Part shown: positions 2,472 to 56,231 of the stretch, in pieces
Layout: each line of letters opens with the position of its first letter
How positions within the stretch are numbered: position 1 is the stretch's first letter
Source of the DNA: Blastocladiella emersonii ATCC 22665
Taxonomy: Eukaryota; Fungi; Blastocladiomycota
NCBI GenBank assembly: GCA_025594325.1
Contig: JANHCV010000008.1
Location: 434,001-498,000, forward strand
Length of the DNA stretch: 64,000 nt
Reading direction: 5' to 3'
Notes under the pieces: model-generated
Databases searched by the model: none
The model's input: the letters and a program-made list of their open reading frames with translations, nothing else
What the model was told of the DNA's origin: nothing
Translations under genes and position numbers: made by a program

Positions 2472-5287
2472 CTACGGATCGAACATGAGCGCCGCCGCGG
2501 GCCCCGCCGCCGCACCCGCGACCGTCGTTCCGGGGAACACGATCCCGCACCGGTTCGCAACGGCCGCGGGCGTACCATGGGCGCGAACATGCCCGAGCGT
2601 GATCCACATTTCGCTGGCGCACTCGAGCCGGCTCACCACCGTGCCGCCCTTCCACATGACGGCGCGCGGGTCGAGGTCGCGCGGCGGCGGGGTCACACTC
2701 ACGAGAATATCGCCGCCTGCCGCGGTATTCACGAGGTGCGTGACGGGGATCGTACGCTTGAGCCGGTCCTCGAGGACGCGCGTGGCGAACCCGGGGACGC
2801 GCGCGCCGCCGCCCACCAGCAAAATCGACGCGTACTGGCGGCGGATCCGGTCGTCGGTGCGCGTGCCGTGGATCAGCGCGTGGATCGCCGCGTCGAGCGG
2901 GGGCGCGACCCACGTGCGGGTGTACTCGTCGACGGTCAGCTTGGCAGGCGCGTCCACGTCCATGCTGTCCTCTTCCTCTTGGTCGTCCGCGTCGTCACCG
3001 ACCCCGCTGTCGATCCCGGGGAACTTGAACCCGCTCGCGACGCGCTTCTTCTTCTTCCCGACAACCTCCTGGTCCTCGCGCAGCCGGTCAGTGTACATGA
3101 GCTGCGCCGTGAGCGCGCACCGGTGCGCGAGCCCCGCGGGCGTCGCCGTGGGCTGTGCGGGCTGGCCCCACGCGAGCACGCCGGGCCACGGCGTCGGGTG
3201 CACGAGCGTCGACGGCCACAGGTTGCCGACGGTCGGCGCGTACGAGTAGCTGAGCATGCGCGCGTGCCGGTTCAGGTCGGCGAGTTTTTGCGGCAGGTTG
3301 GGGACGGCCGACGGGTAGAAGAGGGACTACACACGCGATCACAGTGAGCCACATTCCCGCGACAGTGAGAAAAAGAAAACCGTACCAGCGGCGCGAGGTA
3401 CAGCTCGGCGTACATCTTGGTCGCGTACTTCTGCGTGACACGCCCGGGCTCGCGCACGTACACGTCGACGACCTGGATCGCGAGATCCCCTTCATTCGCG
3501 GTACACCACTGCTCCTTGATCCCCTCGACGAGCTGCATGAACCGCGGCGGGACGCCCCCACCCACAACACTCGGCTCGAGCACCGCGCCGCCGCCGGGGA
3601 CGTGCCGCGCGAGGGGCGTGCGGTTCTCGCGCATCAGGTCCCACAGGACCTGCGTCACGTCGTCCCCACCCACGAGGATCCGCGCGGCGTCAACGACCTC
3701 GCCATTCTCGATCACCGCCACGGACGTCGCCTGGGCGCCGATATCCACGACGCACGCGGACGAGAGCCCGGCGCCGAAACACGCGAGCTGCGACTCGTGC
3801 CCGACGAGCGCCGAGTGGCACCCGAGCGAGTCGAGGACGACGCGCAGCAGCTCGTCGACGGCGCGGTGGTCGAGGAGGTCGGGGAGGACGAGCACGACGC
3901 GGGTCCGAGAACGCGCCGCGGCGTCCGCGACCCCCAACTCGACGCGCAGCACGTGCTCGAAGACGGCGGCCACGTCGTGGTGCCACTCGGCGAGCGACGC
4001 GTAGTCGCGCGTGTTGACGGATTTCGCGCGGAACGGGTGCACCACCGCGTACTGCGTGCGCGCGGCGTCGTCGAGGTCGAGCGCGGGCTGGCCGACGATC
4101 ACGTCGGGCGATTTTCCCGAGATACCGACCCAGTCGACGTGGAACGGGTCGTTGATCGCCGACACGCTGACGGCGCGCGCGCCCTGGTTGAAGCTCTGGA
4201 CCATGGCCGCCGCGTTGATGGGCGTGCGCAGGTTGCCGTCGCGGATCTTGCCGCGCAGGTGGTCTTCCATGGCGGCGCGCGCGGCGGTCGCGAGCGGGTT
4301 CTCGGCGGCAGCGGCGGAACCGGCGGCTTCGCGGTCAGCGAGCTCGCGCGCGGCAGCAGCGACGGCGGACCGCGCGGCATCGGGCCGGAGACGCCGCGCG
4401 AGCACGTTGGGGACGACCTTGGGCACCACGTCCGTGCTGAACCCGGCGCGCACGTACCGCGAGCCCGGGTGCAGGACCACGATGCGGGGCTCGTCCTCCT
4501 CGTCGTCGTCACTCCCATCCTCGTCGTCATCCTCGACCGTCGTCGCAGGCGGCACGATCGGCTCCGGCACCGCGATTGGCGCCGCGGCCGCCGCCGCCGT
4601 CTCCGCGACGCGCTGCCGCTGCCCCTTGGTCATCTTGCGCCGCTTCGTCCCGCCCGCGACCCCCGTCACCGCCATCTGCACGCCCTCTTCCCCACCCCCA
4701 CCATCCAGCATCCGCGCCGGCAACACCTCCTGCGCCGGGTGCGCGAGGAACCGGGACGTGACATTCCGCGTCATATCCATATTCGACGTGACGACCGCGA
4801 ACCGGTGGAACCGCAGGTCCGGGTCGATCGGCGTCCCCGCGGGCGCGTGGCTCGCCACGTACGTGTGGTTCTTGCGCGTCAGTTTCTTTGAGGTGGCGGC
4901 GGCCGCGGCGGCGGCGGCGGCGGCTGCTGCGGCAGCGGCGGCGGTGGCGGGGAGGGGGAGGATCGAAGGGGTGGTGGAGGTGGAGGTGGTGGACTCGGGT
5001 TTTAGGACCGAGCGGAGGAGCGACGGCGTCGACGCGGCGGCGGACGTCGAGTCGGCCGCGCCCGGTGCGGAGGGGGTCGGGGTCTCGCTGCGCAGGAGCG
5101 ACGCGAGCGACGTCGAGGATGGAGCGGGCGGCGGCGACGTGGCGGGACCAGTCGCGGTGGGCGAGGCGGACGCAGCGGCGGCGGCGGGGTCCTTGAGCAG
5201 CGCGCGCAGGCTCGCGGCGGACCGCCCGCTGCCGCCCGAGGCGGACGACGAGGAGCCGCGGCCGCGTTTCGAGGGAGATGGCGGCAT
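2472..5287 (-). CDS. ARP8: Actin-related protein 8 (INO80 complex); intron about 3329-3383
   Basis: IVVLHPGSRYVRAGFSTDVVPKVVPNVLARR, ACVVDIGAQATSVAVIENG, SILLVGGGARVPGF and MWKGGTVVSRLECASEMWI are Arp8-type actin-fold motifs after a long low-complexity N-terminus. ORFs 3272..5287 and 2472..3257 join across a GT-AG intron. Confidence 0.85.
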
Positions 5288-5363
5288 GCTGATGTTTAGC
5301 TAGAGAAGGGTGGGGGTGATCAACCAAAACTGCGCGTGTGTATGCGACCAAAGCAACCAAAAC

Positions 5364-8300
5364 TCACCGAATGTCCTTGCGCGAGAACCAGTCCGAGACG
5401 ACGCCGAACCCGTCGTCGGCGTGTTGCAGCTGTTACGTTGCAGGGAGTGGTGGTGTGGTTGTTGCCACGAGATGCATTCGTTGCGGGAGAAGCGAAGAGT
5501 GGGCGTGCGAAACGAGCCGAGCGTCAGTCACCTGTTATCCGAGCGCGTCTCTCACCCAATGAACCCGTACCTGGGCATAGAAATCCTCCCCCGCCTTGGC
5601 CGCGAGCGTCTTCTTGAGCGCCGCGACGCGCCTGTGCTCGCGGAAGCACTTTGGGCACTGCTTGGCGCTGCTGGCTTCGTTGAGGCACCTACACTCAACC
5701 GCGGCGTCAGCAACGCCCCCCTCCTCCGCCTTCACCCATGCGAACGTACCGAACGTGGAACGAGTGGCGACAGAAAAAGTGCGCCGTGGGCAACGCAAGC
5801 GGGGTGTTACACGCGGCACACGCCGTGACCTGGAACGTGACGGGTTTCGCCTCGAGCGCCTCGATTTCGCCGTGCATCCGCTGCGTCTCGCCCGCGTACG
5901 TCGCCGCGAGCGACTCGTTCTCGGCGACGACCGCGCGCGCCGCGTCCATGTGCGCCGCAAACACGCCGCGGACGAGCCCGAACCGGATCGCCGGGTTGCG
6001 CGCGAGCACGCCCAGGACTTGCACGGGCGTCAGCGCTTTCGCGGCGTCGATGTGCGCCATCACGTCGCGCAGGTCCGATTCGCGCACCGGGTCCGTGCCC
6101 GCCGTGTACGCGAGGACCGCCGTCCACAGCGCCGGCGCATCCTCGGCGGACCCGTGCTCGCGGACGATCCGGACCATCTCGGCGACATTCCCCGTGAGCT
6201 CCATGTGCACGTCGATCATTGCGCGGGCGTCGCCGCGGCGCGCGTGGAGGTACAGCGTCGCGTGGACCCAGTACCTTGCGCGCGCCGTCATGAGCGCGCG
6301 GTCGGCCGCGACCCGCGAGTCGGGGTGCTTGAGAACCGCCATCGCCGCGTCCGCGTCGGGGCAGCTATCGAACGCCGCGTTCCACACGCCCGCATCCGCC
6401 GCGACCACCGCGCGCGCGCCCGGGTGGTCGAACAGGACGAACCGGTAGAACGCGTGCAGCTGGCTCGACTGCTGCGGCGGGTACAGCCGCGCGAGCGCCG
6501 TCACCTGCGCGAGATCGAGCGTGCCGGCGTCGGCCGCCGCCGCGACGACCGTCTTGAGGAGCTCGGTGGCCGCGCCGGGTCGCGCCGCGATCAGCGCGCG
6601 CCCGAACTGCCGCACGAGCGCGAGCCGCGTCGCCGGGTCGCCCGCCATCTCGGACGACCCCAAAAACGCGAGCGCCGCGTCCGCGTCGTGCGTGCGATGG
6701 ACCAAAATCTGCAGCCGCAGGTCGTGCTGCGCGTGGCGCGTCGCGAGGTCGAGGGCGACGTCCCACAGCCCGCCGGCGACGCAGCACCGGATCGCGACCT
6801 CGACGTCAAACGGCAACTCGGCGTTCCCGCGCACGAGGTCCGCGAGCGCCGCGTGGTCGCCGGCCCGGATCAGCGCGTGGAACAGGAGCTGCGTGTGGTC
6901 GGCGGTCGCGACGCCGCGCTCGTGCAGCGTCTGCAGGTACGCGACCAGCATCGGCTGCGCGTCGGGCCGCGACGACAGCTTGCGCACCACGCGCGACGTC
7001 TCCCACCGCCCGATCGTCGCCTCGTACTCGCGCAGCGCGCCCGACGTGTCGCCTTGCGCGAGCAGGTGGTCCGCGTACGCGCCGTGCAGGTCGGCCGCGA
7101 CGGCGCCCGCGCTGGGGCCCGCGAGGGCGATCGCCGTCGTGAACAGGTGTTCCTGGACTAGCTCGTCGAGGCGCATCGCGAGGGGCTTCTCCTTGAGCCG
7201 CGCCACCGCGACCGTCTCCTCGCTGGCCAAACCCGTGTCGGCGAGCACCAGCAGGTTGGCCCCGGCCGCCGCCGCGACGCACCGGACGTGCGCGAACCGC
7301 GCCACGTGCACGCACAGCCGGTGCTCGAGGTGGTACACGGCGAGCGTGTCGCGCTGCAGGACCTCGTCGGTCGCGATCACCGCGAGGTACGGGGACGGCG
7401 CCCCCGAGATCTCGGGCGCCAGGTTGAGCCACGCAATCGACCGGATCGCCGACGCCCCATCGTCGCCGACCGCGTACGCCTGCCCGCGGCCCGATTCGGC
7501 GCAGAACACGACGAGCGTCTGGTGCTGCACGACGAGCACCTGGCTCCCGCCGCCCTTGGGGAACGGAACCGGCGGGACCACCGCGCCCGCCTCGGCATCG
7601 AGCGCCACGAGCTGGTCGCGCGGCGTCACGCAGTAGACCGCGCCCGCGGTCGTCACGAAAAAGCACGACCCGGCGAACGCGAGCCCCGTGACGGGGTCCG
7701 CGTTGTTCTCCTCGCGCAGCACCACGGGTTTGCCCGCGGGCCGCTCGCGCAGCACGTCGCCGCGAAGGAGGACGAGTGCGCCGGACGAGAAGCCGACGAG
7801 GATCGCGGGGGCGGCGGGTGGGAGGGATTGCGCCACGTGCGTCACGTAGCCCAGCGGGTGCAGGGCGGGGTTGCTCCCGCTCGTGGCGGTGCTGGTGAGG
7901 GAGAGGCGGCGTAGCGCCGAGGCGGCGGTCAGGGACGCCGGCATGCGCAGGTCGCGCACGATAGTGAAGGGCGCGTGGATTGTGTCGAGCGACTGGGACG
8001 TGGTGGCCGTCGGGTCGTAGCGGACTACGCGGATCAGCGGCGCGCCGTCGGGCTCTTGCTACACGGGGACGCGGCGTTAGTGCGCGAAGTTGAAAGGAAC
8101 GAAGAAGAAAACGCACAGCAGCAACCAGCAGCGTAACCGCCGCCGCCTCATGCTTGGTATGCACGCGCATCGCGACGCGCGGGTCGGCGACCACCGTCAC
8201 CGCCGTGATCCGCATCCCGTCATCGACCGCGGGAAAACTCTCGACGCTGACGGACGACGAGACACCTCCGCCCCCGCCCCCGCCGGCGCGCGGCATCGCC

Positions 8301-8521
8301 GAGCTGGCGACGTGCAGGTTCCCGCTCGCGTCGGCGAGGACCACGAACCCGTGTGCGGCGACGGGGGTGCCGGCGACGAGGTCCAGCTCGCTGCACAGGC
8401 GCGCCAGGTCGTCGCCCGCGCCGCGGAACGGCGTGTGGCACGCGTCGAAGAAGGACACGGTGCGCCACCCGGTGCTCGCGGCGGCGGCTGCGGCGAGCGC
8501 GGCGTCGGTGGTGGTGGACAT
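5364..8521 (-). CDS. VPS11: HOPS/CORVET subunit Vps11 (beta-propeller, CHCR repeat, RING-H2); introns include 8059-8116 and two near the 3' end
   Basis: N-terminal GWRTVSFFD; LHGAYADHLLAQGDTSGALREYEATIG; RING TACAACNTPLALPTAHFFCRHSFHVR|CLNE...CPKC; C-terminal LQHADDGFGVVSDWFSR. The introns are canonical GT-AG and keep the frame. Confidence 0.92.
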
Positions 8522-8747
8522 GGAGAGGTGTTGGTGTGGGTTTATAGAGCGCGAAGCATGGAGTCCCGCGCCGGGGTTGGTGGGCGGGGGAGGGGGAAGA
8601 GCGAGCGAAGGTTCCGCGGCGAACGCGAGCGCGTGGCTGGCCGGCCGGAGCTGCCACGTCCGTCGCGTCACGCGGATGTAGCCGGCGCGTCCTTGATCAC
8701 AAGGTTTGCGCGTCTCCCGAACTCTTCGCGAGTCGCGTGCGTGATCC

Positions 8748-9745
8748 GTGTTCCCGCGATCCGCCGCACCAGGAGTTCAAGCAGCCATTCTTGACCACGT
8801 TCTCGCCAACGTGTCCGTGATGGACGCGGCCATGAACGGAAACATGCCCGCGTTGCGGCTGTGGATCCACTCGGGTCGCAATTTCGCCTCTTGTCCGTAC
8901 TACGTCTTAAGTCTAACTCGCGGGTCGCGTCGAATCGTTTGACTTCCTCCGACGGATGCGGTTGGATCGTGGGCCGGGGCTGGGCGCGGCGAGGGTGCTC
9001 ATAGACGTGCGTTCCAAAGACGGTGACGAGGCGGGCCTGTCGATACAGTTCAATTCGGACTTTGGCCTGACTCCGTCAACTGTCTCCTCACTCTGCGCAG
9101 GGTCTAGGCTCAAACCAAGCGCCGGGCGACATTTACGCTGCCACGCTTGCGGAAGGCATTAGGCGAGGGTGTTTCACCTTGAAGCCCTCGTCGATGCGCT
9201 TGACTAGTGTCGGCGCCGCGGTTCTTGCCGATGCGTGCGCCAGTCTGGGGCAGTGTGTTTGCAGCGTTAAGCTTTCATTGATTGGTCTCACGGCTCCGAT
9301 CCTCGCTGCCATGCAACTCCCAGCCACGGTACGGGAGATCACCCTCGCAAAGTGCTTCCTGGCCTACCGCAGCAACGAGATCCACGGTGCCTGACTTCCC
9401 GACTCGGTAGAGGGGCTCCAGATCATCAGCAACCGTTTCGCGCCTCGCGGGTCGTCGAGCTTTCATCGCGTGCTTCCCCGGTCTCAGAAGCGGCCCAGGA
9501 TCGTCTATAGCAGCTTCGGACCGACTGGGATCGACGACCCTTTCGCGCTGCAACCCGCGCGGCGAGGGGCTTCGCACCCTTCTCGGCTCTCTCCGCGGAA
9601 GACTCGCCAAGCTGATTATCAAAGGTTGCGCCTCGACTGCCGTCGAGGCCGCGATCCTCGCTGCCAACATGCCCTCATCACTCGCCACGAGCGCGTAGGT
9701 ACTTGTGCCACTCGTAAAGCGAGTGTCTGCGTCCGTCCATGATCC
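8748..9745 (+). pseudogene. Decayed member of the LRR family found at 31.5-37.6 kb
   Basis: AAMNGNMPALRLWIHSGR resembles SALRLWKASGR. SMRLTSVGAAVLADACASLGQCV...PILAAMQLPATVREITL resembles SMRITSWGAARLRTAFSSTKQAV...PVIAAMGLPSTLKELSL. GA*LPDSVEGL (TGA 9392-9394) resembles GSWLPDSIERL. Broken by stops and frameshifts. Confidence 0.7.
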
Positions 9746-10688
9746 CCGTGGGCTTGCGCGCGGAGCCAGCAGGTTTGAGGACCAAGCCGAGGTGATGCGC
9801 GCGTACACGGTCCAAACGTGGGCAGGCAGTCCGTGCACAAGCCGCAGCCTTGATCTCGTGTCTACGCGTTGCGATTCCCGCCCGCGGGACGTGGTCAGCG
9901 CGCTTGAGCGAGAGAATGACCGGGTCGACGGCGGAAGCCTTTACAGGTCGACGGACCGTGGCGTGAAAGTCGCTGCGGTGAACGCAACGCACTCTTGACC
10001 GCGAGACGTGGCAAAGGCGCCGAGCCCGCTCGGAAGTGCACGAGCTTGGACGGTGAGAAGAGTTGCGGATTGTTCAAAAGTGATTCATGGAGGGCGAGGC
10101 AGGGAGCAAGAACCTGCGGGCGGGGTTGTGGCGGGCTTTCGATCGGGCGCCTCGCTTGCGGCGAAGCTGGTCGACGGAGCATCACCTGACCCATCACATG
10201 ATTTCTCGACGCGTCTCTCACCGTATGAACCCGGTCTGCTTCGGCCTCTCCGCTGTTTCGCTCCTTGAAAAAGCCAGGACAGCAAGTACGCAACGCGAAA
10301 TGCATCAAGTCTATTGCTCGCATCGCGTCCATAGCGTTACTTCGCCACCCTAAAAATGCATGGCCACAACTCACAATAGGTCCCAAACTAGAGCGATCCG
10401 CGACCCCGCGCACGCGTCCGATAGCGTCACCGCTTTGAACGCGACCGTCGCGACAAGAACACGCGTCGGAACGCGTCCCGGCTTGCGTCGACACCTCGCA
10501 GCGCTCGGCCCTCCCGCCCGGGTTCTCAGGGCGCAAGCGCGCAGCGGGCGGGAGAGAAGAGCGCGCGCGCAAAGGCTGCCGACGCGAGCCGACGCGGACG
10601 ACGCGCGTCAGATGTACGCGAACGAGTCGGAAGAATGGGCGCCGATGTGTTCGCGCGGTCACGGACCGTGAAAACGAATGGGACCCGA

Positions 10689-43535: not shown

Positions 43536-44039
43536 GATCGAGCGGGTGCGGATGCCAGAGCAATAAATATGAATGAGTTTGCAGTGACAGTTTCGTGTGC
43601 AAGTTGAGCGGAGTGAGCGCGCGAAGGCCGTGGCCACGATCAGGTCCCTGGTCGCGGATCTGCTCTCGGACGTCAGTTTGACGGATCAATGGGTCTCAGC
43701 AGCGGTGTGTGTTGCAAAGTTAGCAACAGCCGGCTCATCGTTGCGACCCACAAGGCGAATGAGGACCAGCGGAGTCCGCGGAGGCCGTGATGGCCGCAGT
43801 GATGCGAGCCGAGCCTTTCGCTTACCCTCACCAGCTACGTTGAGAAAGCTGTGATTAATCTATGTTTGCAGCATCTGCTTCTCCATGCTGTGATAAACCG
43901 TGTGATGGATGGAGTGACGACGGGCGTCACGCTGGCTCAGCTGATGCTGCTCCGTGTATGCGGCTCAGAAGCCCCACAAGTCCCGCTTCTGCAGCTTCGC
44001 CTTCTCCGCCATCCACGACCGCGTAATCACTCGCAAACC

Positions 44040-45704
44040 ATGAAGCAAGCCGACGAATCCGCCGATCCGCCCACGCTGGCCGACGCACTCGCCATGGAGT
44101 GCGAGTGCATGGCCAAACTCGCGTCGCCCGTGCGCTACATGATGAAGCTCGCGGCGTCGGGCGAACACTCGGACCTGCGCTTTGTCCTGTGCGGCAAGGT
44201 CTCGTACCCGCTGCACCGCGCCATGGTCGCCCAGAGCCCGCTGATCGCTGGGTTGCTCGGCGATGCCTGGCACGCGCCGACGGGCGGATCCTCGCTCCAC
44301 ATCCACTACGCGGTGCCCGACGACGACGAGAACGACGCCGACGTGATCTTCGAGCGCAGCGTGTTCGCGTGGGAGACGGCGGTCGTCGCTATGTACGGCG
44401 GGTGTGCGACGCTCCTCGGCGCGCGTATCACGATTCGGACTTTTCTCGACACGCTCAACGCGGGGATGCATTTCGGTACGGGATCCGCTGAGTGGGCCGT
44501 TGCAACCGCCGCTGACCGAGGCGCACGCTAGACCTTCCGCACCTCGTTGACGTCTGCTGCGAGTACTACCTCGGCCTGCTTTCCGCGCAGGAGGAATCTG
44601 ACGACTTTGCCGAGCTCGCCGCCAACTTACTCATGCGTTTCCCGGAGGGCCCGCCGTCGCCCGAGTTCATGGACCTGACGGCCAAAACCATTCAGCACCT
44701 GCGGTCGCTCGGCCCAAGCGAGTTCACGCGCGAGGTTCTCTTCCAATGCACGCCCGAACTGATTCGTCGCGTCGTACTCTCGCCCAGCTTCTTTATCTCT
44801 TCCGAGATTGACTACTTTAACCTGCTCTGCGATCTCAGTGTCGCGCCCGCGTCCATCATCGCCGCGGTCAGGTTCAGCAGCATGGCAGTCGAGGACGTCC
44901 AAGCTGCGCTCGGCTCGCTGCTAGCGAAGTCCAACCCGGCTTTCCGCATGGCCATCGAGGCTTCGGCGTTCGGGGCAACGGTTCTGCGCTCCGCGGTGCT
45001 TGCAGCTGAGCCGGGCGACACTCGGCTGTTTGACGCGGCTAGTGCCAGCGCCCATGATGGGCGAGAGTCGGAAATTGAGCTTGACGTGGACAGCGACGAC
45101 GAGGGCACCGTGCACGATGAAGGCGCGTGTCCGACGCAAGCTCTCATTGCTGCCGCTACGGCTCCGCGCCGCCATCGGCTCCGCCTCTCGATCTCGCACC
45201 TGCTCGACCCCAAGAGCGAGGACGTCGCGATGGATCTTGCGATGCCGCGGTTCTTTGGCGGCCGGCTCTAGAACATGCGCATCACGCGGCCCGTTGGACC
45301 TGACACCAGCACCGACTTGCTGATGATCGTCATGTACGATTGCTCCCTGCCGTTGCGCCGGCTCAAACGACCGCTAATCATTCCGTGTGACGCTGTGTAG
45401 GGGTCCCGAAGCCGCGCGGTGGGATCCCGAGTACCCGAGCCACTACCCGGACCGGCGCCAAGCGGTGGCCGTCCGCCTGCGCATGGTCATGTACGAGCGC
45501 CCCGAGGCGGACCCGCGTCCTATCTCGACGTGCTCGGGCGAGCTCAAGGAACGCGAGTCGACGCGCGTCGTGCCCATCGAGTGCTCGTGGTCCGAAATGG
45601 GATCCATGGAGAACCGCGAGGGATGGGTGTTCCAGCTCAACGATAAGTTGCCCAAGCGGGGCGGGCGCACGCTGGTGCAGTTCATGGTCGAGGTGGAGCT
45701 GTAG
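44040..45704 (+). pseudogene. BTB-BACK-MATH-like array copy 1; introns 44476-44531 and 45334-45400; single in-frame TAG 45269-45271
   Basis: SDLRFVLCGKVSYPLHRAMVAQSPLIAGLLGDAW (BTB). Spliced exons stay in frame to VQFMVEVEL* except PRFFGGRL*NMRIT. Confidence 0.8.
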
Positions 45705-45797
45705 TGAGTTGTGTGGTGTTCGTTGTTCGGTCATGAACTACTTAGCTTATGCATGGTTAATTTCTTGTGCTAAAGCAGAGTGCTGGGTAAACGAGTT

Positions 45798-45818
45798 GCG
45801 AGACGTGTCGATCAATCA
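45798..45818 (+). promoter_or_regulatory. Putative upstream element GCGAGACGYGTCGATCAATCA shared by BTB copies 2 and 3 and Gag-like 1
   Basis: Exact 21-mer at 45798-45818 and 16800-16820; one mismatch at 48662-48682; 20/23 variant at 16145-16167. The three main copies lie about 110-135 bp upstream of a plus-strand ATG. Confidence 0.5.
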
Positions 45819-45928
45819 TGTGAGTGTCATTTGATCCCGCGCCACACGTCCAAGTCGCGAAGCTCGGCTCGCTGAGCGCGGGTGGAGCTAGCCTCGCTCC
45901 CCCTAACCTTCTTTCAATGCCTGCAAAC

Positions 45929-47556
45929 ATGAAGAAACTTGATGCAACGGATGAAAAACTGCCCACTCTTGCCGAGTCGCTCACCACAGAATGCGACTGC
46001 TCCACGATGCACTCGCCGGCTATTCGGCACCTCCTAAGGCTCGCGGTCAGCGGTGCCCAGTCGGATCTGCGCGTCACACTTCGAGGCAAAGCTTACTCGT
46101 TGCATCGAGCCGTGCTCATTCAGAGCCCTTTCTTTGAAGCACTCCTCAGTGATTCTTGGCGCCCGGAAACGGAGGGAGGCGCCTTGAGCCTTGAGTTTTC
46201 CTTGACCGACGAGGACGGGAATCAAGTCGACGATGCGAGCACGATTTATGCCTGGGAAACCGCGATCGCCGCGGTATACGGTGCTTGCGAAACCCTTCTG
46301 ATTGCTCGAATGTCAAACACAAACTTGCTTGATCTTCTCGGCGCCGCGCTCTACTTTGGTACCACCTTGTCTGTTGCCTGCATCAACGGACTCGTCTGGC
46401 TCATTCGCATATCATTGCCATGTAGATATTCCGCAGCTGGTCAACGCATGCTGCGACTACTACCTGGAACAGCTTGCCGGTTGCTCGTCGTCCCCTGCTC
46501 CGCCTCCAGGGTCCTTCATTACTATTGCTGCCCGGGTGACTTTCTGCTCTACAACAACCGCCCCATCGGCGGTCGCCGCATTGCTCACCTATACGCAGGC
46601 TCATCTGGAGTTCCTGGGCCCACATCCCATCACGCGCGCCGTTCTTGCCAAGTGCGGCCCTGGAATTGTACCACGCATAGCTCTTTCTCCTGCCTTCTGG
46701 ATTTCCTCCGAGTTCAGCTATTTTGAGTTTCTTGTGGAGCTCAAGGTGGAACCTGCCGGCATTCTTGGAGCAATCAAGTTTGACATCATATCCGAGGACG
46801 ACTTGTTACGCGTTCTATCCAGCCCGCTCGCACTGCAGGATCCCTTTTTCCGCGCGGGCATGCGTACGGCCGCCTTCAGCGCGCATGAGCTTCGCGCCAC
46901 TCTGTTCAGAGCGAAAGAGGACGACATGTACTTGCCTCTGCCAGGTTACCCTGCCCCTCCGACAGAGTCTGAGCCTCTTGTTGGCTGCGATCGCGGCGCG
47001 AGCGAGCAGCTCCGTTCTAACGTGGCAGAGGCTCCAGTGGTCGATGCTATCATCTCAATTCGCCGGCACTGCTTGCGACTGGCGATGTCCTTCCAGCCCA
47101 CTTTGTACGGCCAATCCTTCAAAAGTAAGCCTATGTTTTTTGGTGGAATCCTTTATCGACTTTGGGCCACTCGACTCGAAAATTCCAACTCCTACAACAT
47201 TGAATTGAAAGGGTAACGTCGCCCTACAATTCAAACCAGCATCGTGTTTTGGAACTCACCGCTGTGGGCGCTGATGTAGGGTGCCTTGCTCACCGAGTAC
47301 TCCTGGTCCGTACAATGACCCAAGGAAAGTCATCGCTCAGCGCGCCGAGTTTGTCCTTTTCCATGCCAGCGGTGCTGTTACTCAAACCTGCACATCTCGC
47401 AAAAGTGCCCCCCGCATCAATCGACCAGCCCTACTTTGGTCCGAAGCTGGTCGGTGTACAAAGTTTGCAAGATGGCATGACACCTACACGCCCGCTCAAG
47501 TGCTTGTTGATGGCGTGCCTACGATTCGAGTCGTTGCGCATTTTGAGTTGCTGTAA
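45929..47556 (+). CDS. BTB-BACK-MATH-like array copy 2 (apparently intact); introns 46359-46425 and 47213-47279
   Basis: LPTLAESLTTECDC, SDLRVTLRGKAYSLHRAVLIQSPFFEALLSDSW, DIPQLVNACCDYYL, IRRHCLRL..PMFFGGILYRL, TIRVVAHFELL*. Both introns are GT-AG and frame-preserving. Confidence 0.85.
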
Positions 47557-47813
47557 GCTTTAAAACTGCATTCTCGTTGTTGGTGGAACCGAGCCAAAAA
47601 TTGCTCAACCTGGGAAGTGATGGTTTGATTACAAGTCTCAATGTCCCCGCCTTCAACTTTCCGCCGAGAGCATGATGAGCAGGTCGCAATTTATTTCCAA
47701 CTTACTTTAAGGGCGAAAATCAACGATTTAGTTGCTTGCTTGGGCACAACAATTGAGACCCGTTGAAATGCACACGAGTTGCGTGCAATACACCTCACTT
47801 TGCGTCGTGCGCA

Positions 47814-48173
47814 CGCACCCACGCCACTGGGACCATGCACCCTGAGTTCAAGCACACACGCGCACGCTGGCCCGACCGCGAGAAACGCGTCAGGCAATCA
47901 CGCGAGTGGCACGCGCCGGCGGCGCCACACGTCCAGTCACCGCCGGCGGACTGCCTCGCCGCGGGGTCGCACGCTCACCTCAAGCGAGCGTCTCCGCTCC
48001 CTCTGCTTTGGTTCTGGATCGCTGCTACTATTAGCCGTCGTTATACACCCTTCCCTCCCTTATGTGTCTCCCTCCGTCGCCGTGTCCATCACCGTCTCCA
48101 TCATCTCCTCAGCCTTCCGTGCATCGTGCTCAACCTTCCTCTCGCACCCACGCCACTGGGACCATGCACCCTG
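47814..48173. repeat. Perfect 31-bp direct repeat (47814-47844 and 48143-48173)
   Basis: CGCACCCACGCCACTGGGACCATGCACCCTG occurs twice, 329 bp apart. The second copy abuts the start of the truncated BTB-family fragment. Confidence 0.95.
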
Positions 48174-48590
48174 CGGAGGCATCAGCCGCGTTCTCAAGGC
48201 CGTTCGCGACAAGGATGACCCCGACACCTTCACTCTCCATTTGTGCGTCGGTGAAACTCACATGGCGCAGCTGGTCCTCACTCACCTTTTGCGCGTTCAC
48301 TAGGGAACACCAGAAATCTTGTTCATCAAGCCCGTACCAGGATCCCCGCAAAATCTACGCTCACCGAATTCGGTTTCTATCGTACCCTCATGCGATCCGG
48401 CCCGCACAGCCGTCATCGTGTTTGCTTCTTCAGGAAGAGCTCTGCGCACCACAAGCAACGACGTTTTCGGTCGATCCCGCTGCAGGCTTCGCAGAAGAAG
48501 ACGTGGGTTGGCAATGAAGTCAAACGCGCCAAAGTGAACGTCCGCGATATTCCGACGGTTCGGGCGGTTGTGTTCTTGGAGTTGCTATAA
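48171..48590 (+). pseudogene. 3'-only (MATH-like domain) fragment of the BTB array; intron 48243-48303; frameshift
   Basis: CGGISRVLKAVRDKDDPDTFTLH|LEHQKSCSSSPYQDPRK...EELCAPQ, then a frameshift to KKTWVGNEVKRAKVNVRDIPTVRAVVFLELL*, matching the last exons of the other copies. Confidence 0.8.
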
Positions 48591-48794
48591 ACTATCATTT
48601 TTCTTTTCGTTGAATTGGCGCGCCAGAAGGTGACGAAATGCGCACTGAACTCGGAGCAAGTGCGAGACGCGTCGATCAATCATGTGAGCGTCATCTGATC
48701 AGATCCCCCCTTCGTCGCCACAGCGCGCGACTGGGGGCGCCATCTGCGGCGCCGCCGCTTCTCCTCCCAAGTCCCTCCGCCAAGAACAGTTACC

Positions 48795-50418
48795 ATGGAA
48801 CAACTTGATGCAACGGATGGAAAATTACCAACTCTTTCCGAGTCGCTCACCACGGAGTGCGACTGCGTCGGAAAGTACCCGCTGGCCATCCGGCACCTCC
48901 AGCAGCTCGCACTTAGCGGCGACAAGTCTGATCTGACTGTCGTGCTCCGTGGTAACAATTATGCGCTGCACCAGGCTATGCTCGTCCAAAGCCCTTTCTT
49001 CAAGGCGTGTCTCGGCGACTCTTGGCAGGCTTTTGCTGATGTTGGTGGAATCGGCGCGCTAAACCTTGAATTTGCACTCTCGGACGAGGGCGACGGAGAT
49101 GCCGATGACATCGATTGCCGCACGTCGTACGCGTGGGAAACCGCTGTTGCCGCGATGTACGGCGCGTGCACCAAGATTATGGTCGCCCGGCTGTCGCATT
49201 CGAACCTTCTCGACATCCTTGACGCTGCCTTTTATTTTGGGACGTTGACTTGTCGAAACCGTTAAGACAGCAGCATTGATTCTAACCAACGTGTCATATT
49301 GTAGACCTTTCCCAGCTGATCGATGCCTGCTGCGAATTCTATCTCAACCTTCTCTCAAACTGCTCCTCTGCTCCTGGCCACCTCCCGACTGATTTTATCG
49401 CACTCGCTGCGCGCATGATGACCTATTGCGCTCAAAAAACTCTTCCGAAGCCCGTCGCGGATCTGCTCGCGCACACCATCGCACACCTCGAGTTTCTTGG
49501 CCCGCATCCCATCACGCGCGCGGTCCTTGAGCAGTGCAACGACCCCGCGCTCGTTGTCCGGGTGACATGCTCTCATTCGTTCTGGATTCCTTCCGAGTAC
49601 GAGTACTTCACGTTTCTCACCGAACTTAACGTGTCCGCTACCGACATCCTTCGCGTTGTCAAGTTTAACATTATGCCCGACACCAAGCTTCGCCGCGTGC
49701 TTTCCAGCCCACTCGCGTTGCGTGACCCGTACTTTCGAGCAGGCGTTCGCGCCGTAGCTTACGATGCCAACGAACTTCGGGCTGCAATCGTTGAGGCGGA
49801 TCCTGCATCAACACACTTGACTCAAGCAGGATACCCTGATCCACCTACAGAGAGTGAGGATTTTCTTGAAACTAAAGCCGATAGCGGCACCGAGGGTCAA
49901 GCACCAGCGCTCGAATCCATTTTGGCTGTCCGGCGGCATTGCTTGCGAATGACGCTCTCATTCAAGGCCGATTCTGCCGCCGATTTTGTTGAATCCGAAC
50001 CCGTATTTTTTGGTGGAAGTTGTCGTCGACTGCAAGCGGTGCGCGGCAAAGAAAATCCTGCTGATTTCAAATTCTTTATGTACGTATTTTTTTCAATGAG
50101 CGGCAGAACGTATTCTCACTTTTGCTCTGTTTTCTTAGCGAGCGCAACAAGGCAGGAGCCCGAGCCCCTTATGACGACCCACGTCTCAAAATAAGCGAGC
50201 GCTTCGAAATTCTCGCACACAGGGCCAACGATTCCGACTCGAAATTGACCTGCTCAATCCCAAGGGTGTTGCCCAACCTCTCCCGACCAAAAGCTTGGTG
50301 GTCCAGTCCGTACACCCTGACACTGGGGTTCGGTATGCATTATGAGTTCTCTCCCGCAAAGGCGCTCGTTGATGGTGTTATGTCCATCCGAGCAATTGGA
50401 TTTTTGGAGATGCTGTAG
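48795..50418 (+). pseudogene. BTB-BACK-MATH-like array copy 3; intron 1 (49240-49304) has a GG instead of GT donor; intron 2 50080-50138
   Basis: MEQLDATDGKLPTLSESLTTECDC... The exon frames are otherwise intact. At the conserved intron-1 position the sequence reads TTTG|GGACGT where paralogs read TTCG|GTACGG, TTTG|GTACCA and TTTG|GTACGA. Confidence 0.7.
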
Positions 50419-51978
50419 CAAATTTATTTTCACGATTCTTTTTCAGGCAATAAAATCATTTTGGAGGACGCATCAATGCTGGACGCAGCGATTTTGGTCT
50501 CGCTATTCCTGAGCATGACAGCTGCCCAGATTCGATGTTACTCACTATCGCGCCCGACCAATTGAATCCCTCGCCACATCCATTTTCACTCCGAATTTCG
50601 CGCTTGCCCACTTTCTGCTCGAGGGCGATGATCTCGGAAGTCGGCGGGCTTGCTCGCTCGGAGACAGAACGCGAGACGCGCCGAGATATCATGTGACCGT
50701 GATGCAGACCACCTGACCACGCGTCATGCGTTTTTTTTTACCCAAAACTCCGAGTAAATGCACATTGGGCGTATTTAAATGAGCCCTACCGTCTGTCCAC
50801 GCTCTCCGACTGCCAAGTCCTGTACAACCACTTGACCCTTTAGCCATGAACCAGACCAAGAAGCTGCCCACACTCGACGAGTCACTCTCGACCGAGTGCG
50901 AGTGCACCGCCAAACACCCGCCCGTTCTTCGCTCGCTACAGCGCTCCGCCATGACGGGTGTCATGTCGGACACGGCCGTCACGCTGTATGGCAAGCCGTA
51001 CGCGTTGCATCGCTTTAGACTCGCTCAGAGCCCGTTCCTCAAGGCGCTCCTCGATGGTGATTGGCACCCGACAGGCAAGTCTGACGCGCTCAGCGTCGAG
51101 TTCTCGCTGCCAAAGCCCGAAACCGACGGCACGGCCGTCATCCGCAACGACGCGCGCACCCTGCATGCATGGGAGACGGTCGTCGCCGTCATGTATGGGG
51201 CCTGCGCCAAGGGTGTGACTGCCCGCATGTCGTGCACCAACTTCACAGATATCCTTGACGCTGCACTTTATTTTGGTACGATTCGCTCGGTTTACGAGAT
51301 GCTTGTGCGTACCGTAACTGACCACGACTCCTCTACTCCAGAAATGCCCATCCTTGTCGACATGTGTTGCGATTTCTACCTACGTCAACTCTCCGGCATC
51401 TCGAATTCGGCTCCGAATGTCGACTATTTATCTCTAGTCGTACGCATCCTCGAGTCTGGCTCCCTCGCTATGGCATCGAAGCCGTTGAGGGAGCTTGTCG
51501 GTTACACCATCGCGTACCTCCTGGCACTAGGGCCACACCATGGCACTCTCGGGATCCTCCAGCAGTGCAACGCCAAGCTGGCTTCCCAGATCGCACTTTC
51601 GCCGCTGTTCTGGGCCGCGTCCGAGTTTGCATACTACGAGTTTCTCGTAGCTTTGAACGTATCCGCCGCCGATATCCTCCGCTCTGTCAACTACACCATG
51701 ATGTCCGACTACGAGCTGCGCTGCGTGCTCACCAGCACGCTTGCCCAGCGAGACCAGTACTTCCGGATTGGTGTGCGCGAAGCTGCCTTGACAAGCACGA
51801 ACTTTGCTCGAGCCTGTCCGAGACGAGCTCGAAAGAAAAGCGCTTGAATCGAGTCGGGTACCCTGCTCTCCCTTCTGAGACGGCGGGTGAGCCGGTTCTA
51901 CTCGGCGGCCAGGTTGCTCAGCAGGCTGGCGCAACGCCGGCTTCGAGCCAATCGCCAGTCACAGTGAAAAGGCACCCC

Positions 51979-52340
51979 GGTTATGAAATCGCCCTAACCC
52001 GCTCCTAACCCATGGTTAGGGTAGGTTAGCACCGCTTAGGTTTTTCGGAACGGTTAAGAAGGGTTAGGAGACCGGTTAGCGCGATTGAATCTCTAACCAG
52101 TCATGGTCAGGTTAGGATCGTGGGTTAGCGACGCGAGGTTAGGTCGTGGGTTAGCAACGACTAGAAGTCGAGCTAGCGTCGCGGTTAGCAGGCGGCTAAC
52201 AACTAATGAGCTTGTGGGCGCTTAGGCATAGTTTGACGCGCGACGAGGTTAGAGAAGCGCGACTAATCGCGACGAATTAGTGCGAGGTTAGCGCAGATTA
52301 GTATCGGAAGCGATTAGGAGCTGGTTAGCAGCTAATCAGG
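51979..52340. repeat. Left subterminal array of telomere-like GGTTAG/CTAACC motifs
   Basis: 15 exact GGTTAG/CTAACC hexamers (51994, 52005, 52014, 52024, 52062, 52074, 52093, 52110, 52123, 52137, 52149, 52183, 52247, 52286, 52323) plus GCTTAG/GATTAG/GGTTAA variants, irregularly spaced. Confidence 0.9.
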
Positions 52341-55259
52341 CTCGATACTGCTGAATATCATTCACTGACTCATCATGACGCGTTATTCGGCAAATCACGT
52401 ATATTGAGGTGATCGAAACAGCGACCACGCCGCTCGCGCCTGCGCACGCGTTCCACGCGTTGCGTCACACTCGCCGCCCGAAACCACGCCGCCCGAAACC
52501 ACGCCGCCCGCGATCGGCCGGTCTGCGGACACCGCACAGCCCGCGACCGCCACCCGTCACACGCCGCCGCTCCCCCGAGCAGCGACGGCGAACACAACGG
52601 CGAATACCGCCGTACTCGTCGGCCGCGACTCGCGACCGCCGCGTCGAGCCGAAACCAACCGCCATCGCGATGATGGCCAGGTACAGCTCGAGCAGCAGCG
52701 GCAAGCCGCGGCCGCGGACGTGGCGGCGGTCGCGTCCGCCCAGCACCACCGCCTAGTCGTGATGAGGAGAACACGTACATCGATATGCTTGAGCGATACC
52801 GGCTACAATTCACGGCACGCAGGACGTCAGTGAACGGTCCGAGGAGCGCGAGCGAGGCGCCTCGCGACGGCGGCCCGCAAACGAGGCCCGTGAGAGCGGG
52901 CTCCGCTCGCCAGCACGCTCGTCGAGATGCCACGAGAGGCATCGGTGGAGGAGGAGAGGAGAAGACACAGCAGCGTACGTACGGATCAGCGACCAGACGA
53001 GAACAGGCCGACCATGGTTGACATCGACCTTGACACCGACCTGGGACGATTCCGTTAACCTAGACAATGACGAGCGGACACAGTCCAGGTTAGCCATGAG
53101 TTCGGTTGGCCGACGAGACACACACGACCGTCACGGTCAAGCTGGGAGGAGGCGTACCCGTCGCCGTCACGTCGGCCGTGGCGCGCATGCTATACGAGGC
53201 GAATATCTAGACGAGGGGCGGCCGCGGGGGAGAAGAGTGCCTTGCTGAGCAGAGGGCGGGCGCGCGAAGCTTAAATACCGCCGCGGCGGAAGGACCCTCC
53301 CGGTCTCAGCAAGAACGCGAGCGAAGGGGTTCGAAACCTTGTTCGGTCCCCACGACGCGTCACGTGCAGATGACCGCCGCGTCCACAACTGCACGGCTGG
53401 CTCGCACGCCGTTGCACGAGTCATGCTACCCGTGTCGCAAAATCCTCAAAGGTTTTTTCAACACGACACAGAACTGAATAAGGCACTGCTTGCAACGTAT
53501 TTAACGGAAGAAATACAATCAAATGCGTCCAACTGGTGCCCTGGCGCTGTGTCGCGCAACGGCGACGCGGTCGCCCTGTTCACGCACCATCAGAGGGCGG
53601 GTAGAACAGCTTGTGCGACGGGACATCGGGATGCTCTGCGAGCACCTCGGCCTCGCGAATCCGGTCCTGGCGGTTAGTCTCGATGGTCGAGTCCGCGTGC
53701 CGCGCGGCCATGTCGAAGCCGAGGGTCGCCTGCTCGCTCGCGCGCACGTCAAAAGGGACGAGCATTCCCGCCATAGGCATCTCGGGCGAGGCCGCGAAAT
53801 GGTCGACTGCGACGACGGCCAGGCGCCGGTTCCCGCGCGCGTGATGCTGAGGTGAGGGCGTGGATGCGTCATCCTCACCAATCTCGGCGGGATGGTAGAG
53901 CGCAATCGGGCGCACCCGATCGATAAGGCGCACAATCTACACTCGTCCCTCGCGTGTCAGTCAACCGCGACAAAAAGACGCCCATCACGCGTCCACATAC
54001 CTTGGCGCTGCGCCACGAGGGGCGACGCCGCTTGACCTTGGTGACACAGTCGCCGACGACGAGCCTGAACTCAAACTGCAGCAGGTCATGCACCGACTTC
54101 TCGCGGTTGGCGGGGACGAGGCTCCCACACTGGCCGAGCTGCGCGACAAACTGATGCACCGGGTGAAACCTGCCCCGCCCTTGGCGCCGACGACGGATGC
54201 GTTGAAGTCCACTGTGCGTGGCGCGAGGCGCGCAGCTGTGCGTAGTAGGGCGCCATCGAGTCGGTATCGCGCGGTGGTCCCTCTAGATGCAGAACCGGTA
54301 CATGACGCTCCCGACGACTTTGCGTGGGCGATCTTCGGTCGCCGCCATGGTCGCTCAAGGGTACAGCATGGTAAGGACGTGCGCATGCGCGAGCCCCGCG
54401 GCGAGCAGGCACGCGGCGGCGTACAGACCCGCGGTGAGCGGCGGGGCGCGAGTATCGGCGCCCGTGGCCAGCTGGGCGTGCAGGACGGCAGCGACGGCGA
54501 GGAGCCTTTGGAGTACGTCGCGCAAGAACGAGGTGACGCGCAGGGCGGCTCAGCACATAGCGCGGTTGGCGGTGGCCAGGTCCGCCGCGACAAACAGCGC
54601 CTGGAGCCAGCACAGGGACGGCGACACGAGCGGGTACCTGGTGAACGGCGGAACGGGGATATCAAGGACAATCACAACGAAGTGCGGGAGGACCTGATGC
54701 AGGTCGCGGTCTCCCGCCGCGCTTTCCGTGTTGGCGTCCATTCACCTGGCACGCATCGTGATACCGCGCCTGTTACGGGAAACGCTCAGCAACAAGCAAG
54801 CGCTCACCGTCTTCTCGCGGCGCTGGAGCGCGGCCGCGCCAGCAACTCATGGCCTCGAGCTTGTGTCGGCGCTCGCGCGGTGCACGGGTTTCTTCGAGTA
54901 CGTCGGCCAGGTCTTTGCGCAGGTGACGCTCGTCAACGAGGTCGACTACTTGCATGACGACCTCGCCGACAACTTCCCCAAGCGGATCGAGATCGCGGGC
55001 GTGCGACGGATCGAGGAGCCCTTGGACGCTGGCGACGGCGCCCACCTGGCCCTTCCAGTGCAGGCCATCACGGCGCGCGTGTGCAGCGACCGGCGCTTGA
55101 CGCGGTCGGAGCGGCGGAGAACGGTCGAGGCGCCGATCACCACGGTGGACGCCACGACGACGCGGGCAAGCTGGATCGCGTGCGAGATCCCGACGTGGAC
55201 GAGCACATAGAAGGCGTTGCAACTAGTATACATGGTATATTCATTGAGTAACGGTGGGA

Positions 55260-55440
55260 GTGCTTAGGCCGAGGTTAAGGGAAGGGTTAGCGTGATGGAG
55301 TTGCAAACCGGGCCAAACTCTATCCTAAGCCGCACGCCAAGCTAAGCTTTCCTAACCGAGGTGCTAGCTCAGGGACTTTGGCGCGTGGCGCCGATCGCGA
55401 TCGCACCGCATCTAAGCCCGCCTAACCGCAGCCCTAACCT
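55260..55440. repeat. Right subterminal array of the same motif
   Basis: GGTTAG 55285; CTAACC 55352, 55422, 55434; variants GCTTAG, GGTTAA and CTAAGC (3 copies). Confidence 0.85.
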
Positions 55441-56231
55441 GGGTGCTTTTTCACTGTGGTGCTCAACGTTCTTGCCGCTCCACGCCGCCACTGGCTTTGT
55501 ATGACGCTCAACATTCAACCCGACTCCGCAAAACAGATGATTGAAGGCACTCCGGTTTTCTTTGGTGGCGTGACCCATGTTCTGCAAGCCGTCCGCAAGG
55601 CCGATCCTCCCAGGTTGTACCCGTTCCACATGTACGTCATCCCAAGGACGATGAACAGCGATGACTGGCTGATACTAACCGCGTTACAATCGGCCATCCT
55701 AGCATGGAGAAAGGTTCGACTACCACCAGTCCGTACTCTGACCCTCGCGAACTGCGCGCGATCCGTGTTTCGATCAACTCGTACACGTCAGTGACAAGAT
55801 CCGCCAGGAAGACGGTATGCTCGCTTCCCGAGTTCGAGCTGTGCGCGCCGCAGCCGCAGCCAGCCTGGTCACTCCCGATGAACTCGGGTAAGAAACTTGG
55901 GTATCGCGGCAACACCAATAAGCCGTACGAGGTCAAGTTTCTGGATAAGCCAATTATTCGTACGGTGGTTTACCTGGAGTTGCTGTAACGGCCGGCTGAT
56001 CGGAATGTGCTGATCTTGATTATATTCCACATCATAATGCTTTATTTCCTTGCTCAGGTAGCCTGCGTGCGACGTTAGACGCGTCAGACGTTGAAGGTTT
56101 GAGCAATCTTTCGCTGCGACGCTCGTTGTTGGTTCAGATGTCCAGTAATGCCGGACGGATAGAGCCAAAAACGTCACCTTTCCTCAAATAAAACCTTTAA
56201 TAGCACTCCGATCAAGAACAACACCAGCAAC

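Follow-up and report, generated by a model that had tools for sequence, protein, structure and literature searches.

A CACAGTG-ended transposon with a 2-bp target-site duplication in Blastocladiella emersonii and its probable relationship to CMC/CMCT-type elements

Introduction

The CMCT clade of DNA transposons, which includes Transib, is characterised by C(2)C and H(3–4)H motifs in the transposase, by target-site duplications (TSDs) of 2–5 bp and by CA..TG ends in most of its lineages (Kojima 2025, PMC12730594). Within the CACTA/Mirage/Chapaev (CMC) elements, DUF1258 corresponds to the Mirage group, which is close to Transposase_21/CACTA (Majorek et al. 2014, PMC3985635), and fungal members include CNEST, with 33-bp terminal inverted repeats (TIRs) beginning with CACGG and a 2-bp TA duplication, and CNIRT6, which ends in CACTG (bioRxiv 10.1101/2025.05.19.654958). 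In the genome paper of the early-diverging fungus Blastocladiella emersonii (PMC9730499), transposons are unmentioned. The subject of the present analysis is a DNA transposon at 51960–55458 of a stretch of 64,000 nucleotides (hereafter the window; contig JANHCV010000008.1, positions 434,001 to 498,000 of the forward strand) in the assembly GCA_025594325.1 of B. emersonii ATCC 22665. This element is very probably a non-autonomous member of a young cut-and-paste family, which would be mobilised by a DDE enzyme of the CMC/CMCT type like the one predicted at a related locus on contig 13 (L007). Its termini, CACAGTG...CACTGTG, are shared by the window copy, by two further full copies (L002 and L003) and by the right end of L007. 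CACAGTG is also the consensus heptamer of the recombination signal sequence (RSS) of V(D)J recombination, so the kinship of the element with Transib and RAG is weighed below as well.

Ends, target-site duplication and subterminal repeats

A preliminary description, made from the letters of the window, had proposed 24-bp TIRs (22/24 identical) flanked by GT, and both are borne out. The left TIR lies at 51960–51983 on the plus strand and starts CACAGTGAAAAGGCACCC, the right TIR lies at 55435–55458 on the minus strand and its reverse complement starts CACAGTGAAAAAGCACCC, and the two are complementary at 22 of their 24 nt (92%). An 18-nt pattern derived from the TIRs has two matches in the 64-kb window, namely the two ends, with 0.05 expected by chance. 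Directly outside the repeats stand the two copies of the duplicated GT, at 51958–51959 on the left and at 55459–55460 on the right. The TSD is thus 2 bp long, and direct repeats of 3 bp or 5 bp are incompatible with the flanks (the 5-bp flanks read CCAGT versus GTGCT).

The subterminal repeats that had been noted in the same description are also confirmed, and under both ends. In total, the hexamer GGTTAG/CTAACC occurs 21 times in the window element versus 1.4 times expected from shuffles (~15-fold), with 15 occurrences in the first 370 bp and 4 in the last 175 bp. The left subterminal zone (51984–52335) contains those 15 hexamers in both orientations, together with a 26-bp unit repeated 1.9 times at 52109–52159, and the right subterminal zone (55285–55439) contains the other 4. 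GGTTAG is a permutation of the canonical telomere unit TTAGGG, and there are 0 tandem TTAGGG dimers in the window element. Since the telomere-like repeat of B. emersonii is AAACCT (AGGTTT) according to the genome paper (PMC9730499), GGTTAG is not the organism's own telomere repeat.

Other copies and age of the family

The window copy was compared with two further full copies of the same assembly, which were reached through the GenBank models of a 177-aa product (three near-identical sequences, four gene models). The L002 copy (4839–8326 of its locus, 3488 bp) lies on contig 3 and is flanked by AC...AC in locus orientation, while the L003 copy (4840–8325, 3486 bp) lies on contig 8, about 490 kb downstream of the window copy, and is flanked by GT...GT in locus orientation. 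Their first and last bases coincide with those of the window copy, and in both the inverted repeat extends to 26 nt at 96%. A 2-bp direct repeat in the flanks is therefore present in 3/3 independent copies, for which the probability by chance is about 1 in 4096, and the dinucleotide is always GT:AC. The pairwise identity of the full copies is 97.3–98.7%, which supports the recent insertion that had been suggested for the window copy from its near-intact TIRs. In addition, in read contigs assembled from four DNA runs of one sample, depth is 4–10 times higher inside the window element than in its flanks, loose ends coincide to the base with positions 51960 and 55458/55459, and the flanks of at least one further copy are included, possibly with a GA duplication.

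The window copy has a mosaic structure. It shows 64 differences from L002/L003 that are private to it, and 58 of these are located in the left ~1.25 kb (51960–53210; ~4.6% divergence) but 6 in the right 2.25 kb (53210–55458; ~0.3% divergence), a distribution which suggests that two subfamilies have exchanged sequence by recombination or gene conversion. A second copy on contig 3 was rejected as an independent insertion, as it sits in a perfect 3.6-kb inverted duplication. In this duplication (L005 1–3587 and 5702–9288, JANHCV010000003.1) the arms are 100% identical and separated by a 2.1-kb spacer, each arm holds one element end and a 409-aa gene, and the arms probably continue past the locus. 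Either a palindromic duplication took place recently, or the structure is an artefact of the assembly.

The L003 copy is itself nested inside another transposon, at L003 4626–11968 (JANHCV010000008.1, ~981.7–989.1 kb), whose ends are 5′-CATCACAAAACCCGG...CCGGGTTTTGTGATG-3′ with CG on both flanks and CAATTG-like subterminal motifs. Minus the insert, this host transposon is 3859 bp long and carries two small head-to-head gene models, in neither of which was a Pfam family found. It matches the description of PlavakaB (CATCA..TGATG ends, 2–3-bp TSD; PMC12730594), and no empty-site copy of it was found among the fetched loci.

A related locus and its predicted transposase

Within the window element, a 170-codon open stretch reads toward the right end and contains the strongest codon-usage signal of the element (plus strand, 54775–55000). 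A full HMMER search with this stretch, against 1.84 billion representatives, gave one real relative (P0006), the 106-aa GenBank model H9P43_009142 of contig 13, at L007; a second match (P0007), a low-complexity repeat protein of another organism, was discarded. At the nucleotide level, the right 714 bp of the window element (54745–55458) are 94.7% identical to the 720 bp at L007 10081–10800, and the shared stretch ends at L007 in an identical 18-nt terminus, followed by unrelated flank. L007 has two long, overlapping open frames, 6760–8616 (619 codons) and 8426–10549 (708 codons), which are split by a single 1-nt shift in the G run CTTGGGTGCC near 8460, and from the first ATG at 6835 the gene comprises about 1,238 codons across both frames. 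To residues 552–708 of the 8426–10549 translation, 155 codons of the window align locally at 93%. The window element thus retains, at 54745–55210 on the plus strand, the last ~157 codons and the stop of the transposase gene as a relic of its 3′ end, and at 54793 a loose end of a read contig marks a diverged relative that continues the 170-codon frame upstream.

In the enzyme predicted from L007, the following motifs occur, in the sequence that CMC enzymes would lead one to expect: LVLNIDW (first D), IPGPVEP, VSVACDIPA (second D), CHFC (C(2)C), HYALH (H(3)H) and FAFERWNG (E), the residue roles being assigned from the motif pattern, without alignment to reference enzymes. That is to say, the CMC signature D..D..C(2)C..H(3)H..E is found in the L007 relative and not in the window copy. 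Pfam Transposase_21 matches the first-D/IPGP part weakly (E = 0.0025), and Pfam DUF1258 matches the second-D/CxxC part, also weakly (E = 0.03). In the Atlas feature search, the neighbours of the enzyme at 0.92–0.96 that carry a Pfam family have Plavaka or Transposase_21, and lower-ranked ones (0.88–0.89) have DUF4218 or DUF1258, so that all neighbours with a Pfam family belong to CMC families; the predicted structure of the nearest cluster is linked to plant CACTA proteins.

As for the surroundings of this gene, the upstream part of L007 contains a PIF1-like helicase repeat as well as an F-box-like gene of the host. The helicase open reading frame (ORF; Pfam PIF1, E = 8e-21), at L007 4740–6179 and L003 271–1458, is part of a repeat common to contigs 13 and 8 at 97.5% and stands directly upstream of the CMC-type transposase gene of L007; no Rep or transposase accompanying it was visible within the fetched loci. 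At the other end, CACTGTG is followed by TC and then by the annotated ATG (10803) of a 336-aa gene (L007 10800–10803). Either the insertion at L007 replaced the whole upstream region of this gene, or the 336-aa gene model is an artefact.

Classification and comparison with described systems

Taken from its motifs, the L007 enzyme is predicted to be a DDE transposase of about 1,240 residues belonging to the CMC/CMCT group (CACTA-EnSpm, Mirage, Chapaev, Plavaka and relatives). The termini of the window element are of the CA..TG (CAC) type, and its TSD lies within the 2–5 bp of the group. The CMC-type assignment made in the preliminary description is supported by the L007 motifs, the two Pfam matches and the CMC neighbours in Atlas, and of the two possible classes of partner enzyme that had been named there, Tnp2/Transposase_21 and Transib/RAG1, the CMC side is favoured and the RAG1/Transib family was not matched. 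The family is very divergent and probably new, within a superfamily that is already known, and its host is an early-diverging fungus. Judged from what it retains, the window element is a deletion or replacement derivative that has kept the transposase tail; since only the last ~157 transposase codons are left, the window copy would be non-autonomous and moved in trans.

Mirage resembles the element in the 2-bp TSD, in CAC-type ends and in a DDE enzyme whose second D is followed by C(2)C, and the D2-CxxC segment of L007 has its best match, a weak one (E = 0.03), in DUF1258, which is Mirage according to PMC3985635; however, the proteins described for DUF1258 come from animals, for the most part nematodes. 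CACTA/EnSpm elements have the same 5′-CAC..GTG-3′ ends and arrays of short subterminal repeats, and the L007 enzyme is connected with them through the weak Transposase_21 match and the Atlas link to plant CACTA proteins, but their TSD is 3 bp (PMC12730594) rather than 2 bp and their ends are CACTA rather than CACAG. Plavaka A/B (Kojima 2025, PMC12730594) are likewise found in fungi with a 2-bp TSD, and several of the Atlas neighbours carry Plavaka (0.92–0.94), whereas their ends are TGT..ACA (A) or CATCA..TGATG (B) instead of CACAGTG..CACTGTG, and the Pfam Plavaka domain (PF18759) has no match to the L007 enzyme at E ≤ 10. PlavakaB-type elements with CATCA..TGATG ends occur in the same genome, one of them being the host of the L003 copy. 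ESTA/CNEST elements, which are EnSpm-like, are also fungal and CMC-type, with a 2-bp TSD and CAC-type ends, but their duplication is always TA, while here it is GT/AC, with the possible GA of the fourth copy in the read contigs.

Coding content of the window copy

In contrast to L007, no transposase or other credible Pfam family was found in the window element among 20 stop-free segments of at least 88 codons in all frames. Between the left subterminal zone and the relic lies an interior of 2.4 kb (52336–54744), with no long ORF and no family match, and with no similarity to L007 or to the rest of the window. The pattern of short ORFs is common to all three copies, and patches of coding-like codon usage exist on the minus strand as well. 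When the longest internal ORF (352 codons) served as the query of a word-based homologue search, 0 matches were returned, itself included, and this frame is probably non-coding; in exact look-ups of ten ORFs of the window, the sole recorded one was the neighbouring 645-aa gene. No Rfam family was found in or around the window element. A relationship of the interior to the PIF1-like helicase ORF of L007, which had been hinted at by tblastx, was rejected: the best tblastn match of the helicase protein has E = 1.1, and scattered matches of this kind occur all over the GC-rich window.

GenBank places two hypothetical models on the minus strand of the window element, one of 102 aa (54355–54756), which enters the relic part by 12 bp, and one of 177 aa (H9P43_006710, 53580–54303). 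The 177-aa product has no homologue beyond its own copies among 5.8 billion proteins (length range 65–206 aa) and no Pfam family, its language-model recognition score in Atlas is at the level of shuffled sequences, and the first exon of its model is only 4 codons long. Both models are probably spurious; that is, two "hypothetical protein" models of GenBank (H9P43_006710 and paralogs) fall within copies of the transposon and are unlikely to represent genes.

Insertion site and host reading frame

The element is inserted into an ORF on the plus strand, whose upstream half occupies 50846–51957 and whose downstream half occupies 55461–55794. This ORF is the fourth copy of a four-copy tandem paralog array, which spans 43851–51959 and 55461–55794 of the window. 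When the element and 2 bp are removed in silico, a stop-free frame of 323 codons is obtained, and the joined host protein aligns without gaps over the junction with paralog copies 2 and 3 (...SPVLNVLAAPRRHWLCMTL... versus ...APALESILAVRRHCLRMTL...). Besides the transposon insertion, the host ORF shows a second frame change upstream, near 51.8 kb; it has no gene annotation in GenBank, which is true for at least array copies 2–4, and no Pfam match, BTB or any other, was found for the ORF or the paralog array even at E ≤ 10. Given the upstream frame change, the missing annotation and the lack of a Pfam BTB match, the host is best seen as a paralog within a tandem array, one without annotation and perhaps already defective. 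Insertion into a reading frame, as proposed in the preliminary description, stands, while the label "BTB-4" that it gave to this frame is unverified.

Alternative explanations

Several observations qualify, or weigh against, the assignment to a CMC/CMCT-mobilised family with precisely defined ends. Removal of 5 bp likewise keeps the host frame open, so the restored frame, from which both ends had earlier been fixed to the base, is insufficient by itself for this purpose; it is the independent copies that fix them. Both Pfam matches of the L007 enzyme are under the curated cut-offs (Transposase_21, 17.5 versus 28.6 bits; DUF1258, 14.3 versus 33.1 bits). No homologue was returned by a word-based search with its 708-residue piece and nothing relevant by sequence searches of the PDB, and the AlphaFold single-sequence model of the enzyme was unusable (pLDDT 39.8). 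Moreover, neither a left repeat nor a GGTTAG zone was found at L007 within 10 kb; with its gene frameshifted and its left end missing over that distance, a complete autonomous copy was not seen among the fetched loci. The 2.4 kb of interior in the window element, finally, are unexplained.

The exact heptamer makes it conceivable that the element is of the Transib/ProtoRAG type, in which case the CACAGTG ends would be true RSS-like signals for a RAG1-core-like transposase. In favour of this, the terminal heptamer is identical to the RSS consensus, and Transib stands in the same wider CMCT clade, with the zinc-binding C(2)C/H(3–4)H motifs in common (PMC12730594). However, Transib and ProtoRAG are distinguished by a 5-bp TSD, a RAG1-core enzyme and an RSS nonamer at 12/23 spacing, and none of these is found here. 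The TSD is 2 bp in all three copies; in the window the heptamer CACAGTG is followed by AAAAAGCACCC and then by GGTTAG hexamers; and at a distance of 12 or 23 bp inward from the heptamer there is no RSS-like A-rich nonamer, the positions there reading GGTTAGGGC/CGGTTAGG-like. Moreover, the linked L007 enzyme has its best Pfam matches in Transposase_21 and DUF1258, neither half of it matches the RAG1 family at E ≤ 10, no RAG1/Transib cluster is among its Atlas neighbours, and it has no sequence match in the PDB. Since the duplication is 2 bp, Transib is excluded, and this reading, already largely refuted by the TSD length, is regarded as exceedingly improbable.

Two further explanations concern the mobility of the 3.5-kb copies rather than their ends. 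If the 3.5-kb unit were autonomous through one or more novel small interior proteins (the 102-aa and 177-aa models) and used no DDE transposase, it would be understandable that all copies are of near-equal length with the same ORF pattern, that GenBank annotates both small models in several copies, and that the minus strand has patches of coding-like codon usage; but the 177-aa product, lacking outside homologues and a Pfam family, with its shuffled-like recognition score and its 4-codon first exon, is a poor candidate, and the tail of a large transposase gene, preserved in truncated form in the element, is the hallmark of a deletion derivative, so that this explanation is considered very improbable. 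More weight is due to the possibility that the L007 gene is CMC-type but that the family is extinct, L007 being a dead, 5′-truncated remnant and the 3.5-kb copies immobile fossils, for which the frameshift near L007 8460, the left end that was not found, the divergence of 1.3–2.7% between copies and the mutated left repeat of the window copy (22/24) can all be cited. Against extinction, the ~1,240 codons of L007 are open except for one 1-nt shift in a G run, no more than 6 private differences fall in the right 2.2 kb of the window copy, and other full-length copies could exist elsewhere in the assembly; extinction is therefore a serious but doubtful alternative. It is also possible, though unlikely, that the L007-type enzyme founds a separate, deep-branching CMCT lineage in Blastocladiomycota, with substrate ends identical to the RSS heptamer and 2-bp TSDs.

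Proposed mechanism

For the preferred reading, that of a non-autonomous element moved by a CMC/CMCT-type enzyme, the following sequence of events can be proposed. The family comprises about 4–8 copies of ~3.5 kb in B. emersonii, and a full-length relative would express the transposase that acts in trans on the window copy. This transposase would bind the inverted repeats, with the GGTTAG arrays as further, probable binding sites, and the element would be excised by DDE chemistry, as expected from the family. By the same comparison, integration would take place at a 2-bp staggered cut, with a preference for GT:AC, and repair would leave the 2-bp duplication; in the window, the insertion has split an ORF of the tandem paralog array.

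Significance of the heptamer and of the family

With CACAGTG at their ends, the copies conform to the CA..TG pattern that has been reported in most CMCT lineages. As the ends of the clade are CA..TG, and commonly CAC..GTG, identity at the remaining positions of the heptamer is not very surprising there, and it is plausible on this comparison that the clade inherited its recognition of CAC ends from a common ancestor. The exact RSS heptamer is a curiosity, which fits CAC...GTG ends as an old shared trait of the clade that gave Transib and RAG, and taken alone it leaves the picture of how V(D)J recombination originated as it was. If the separate lineage mentioned above were real and an active full-length copy existed, it would provide an enzyme that is neither RAG nor Transib and that cuts next to CACAGTG, with which it could be tested whether the Transib/RAG branch arose only after heptamer recognition and hairpin-type cleavage. 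For the organism, the analysis adds a recently amplified CMC-type family and its probable transposase to Blastocladiomycota. Since the curated models barely detect the L007 enzyme, its sequence would be useful for widening the CMC/CMCT profiles and for annotating the genomes of early-diverging fungi.

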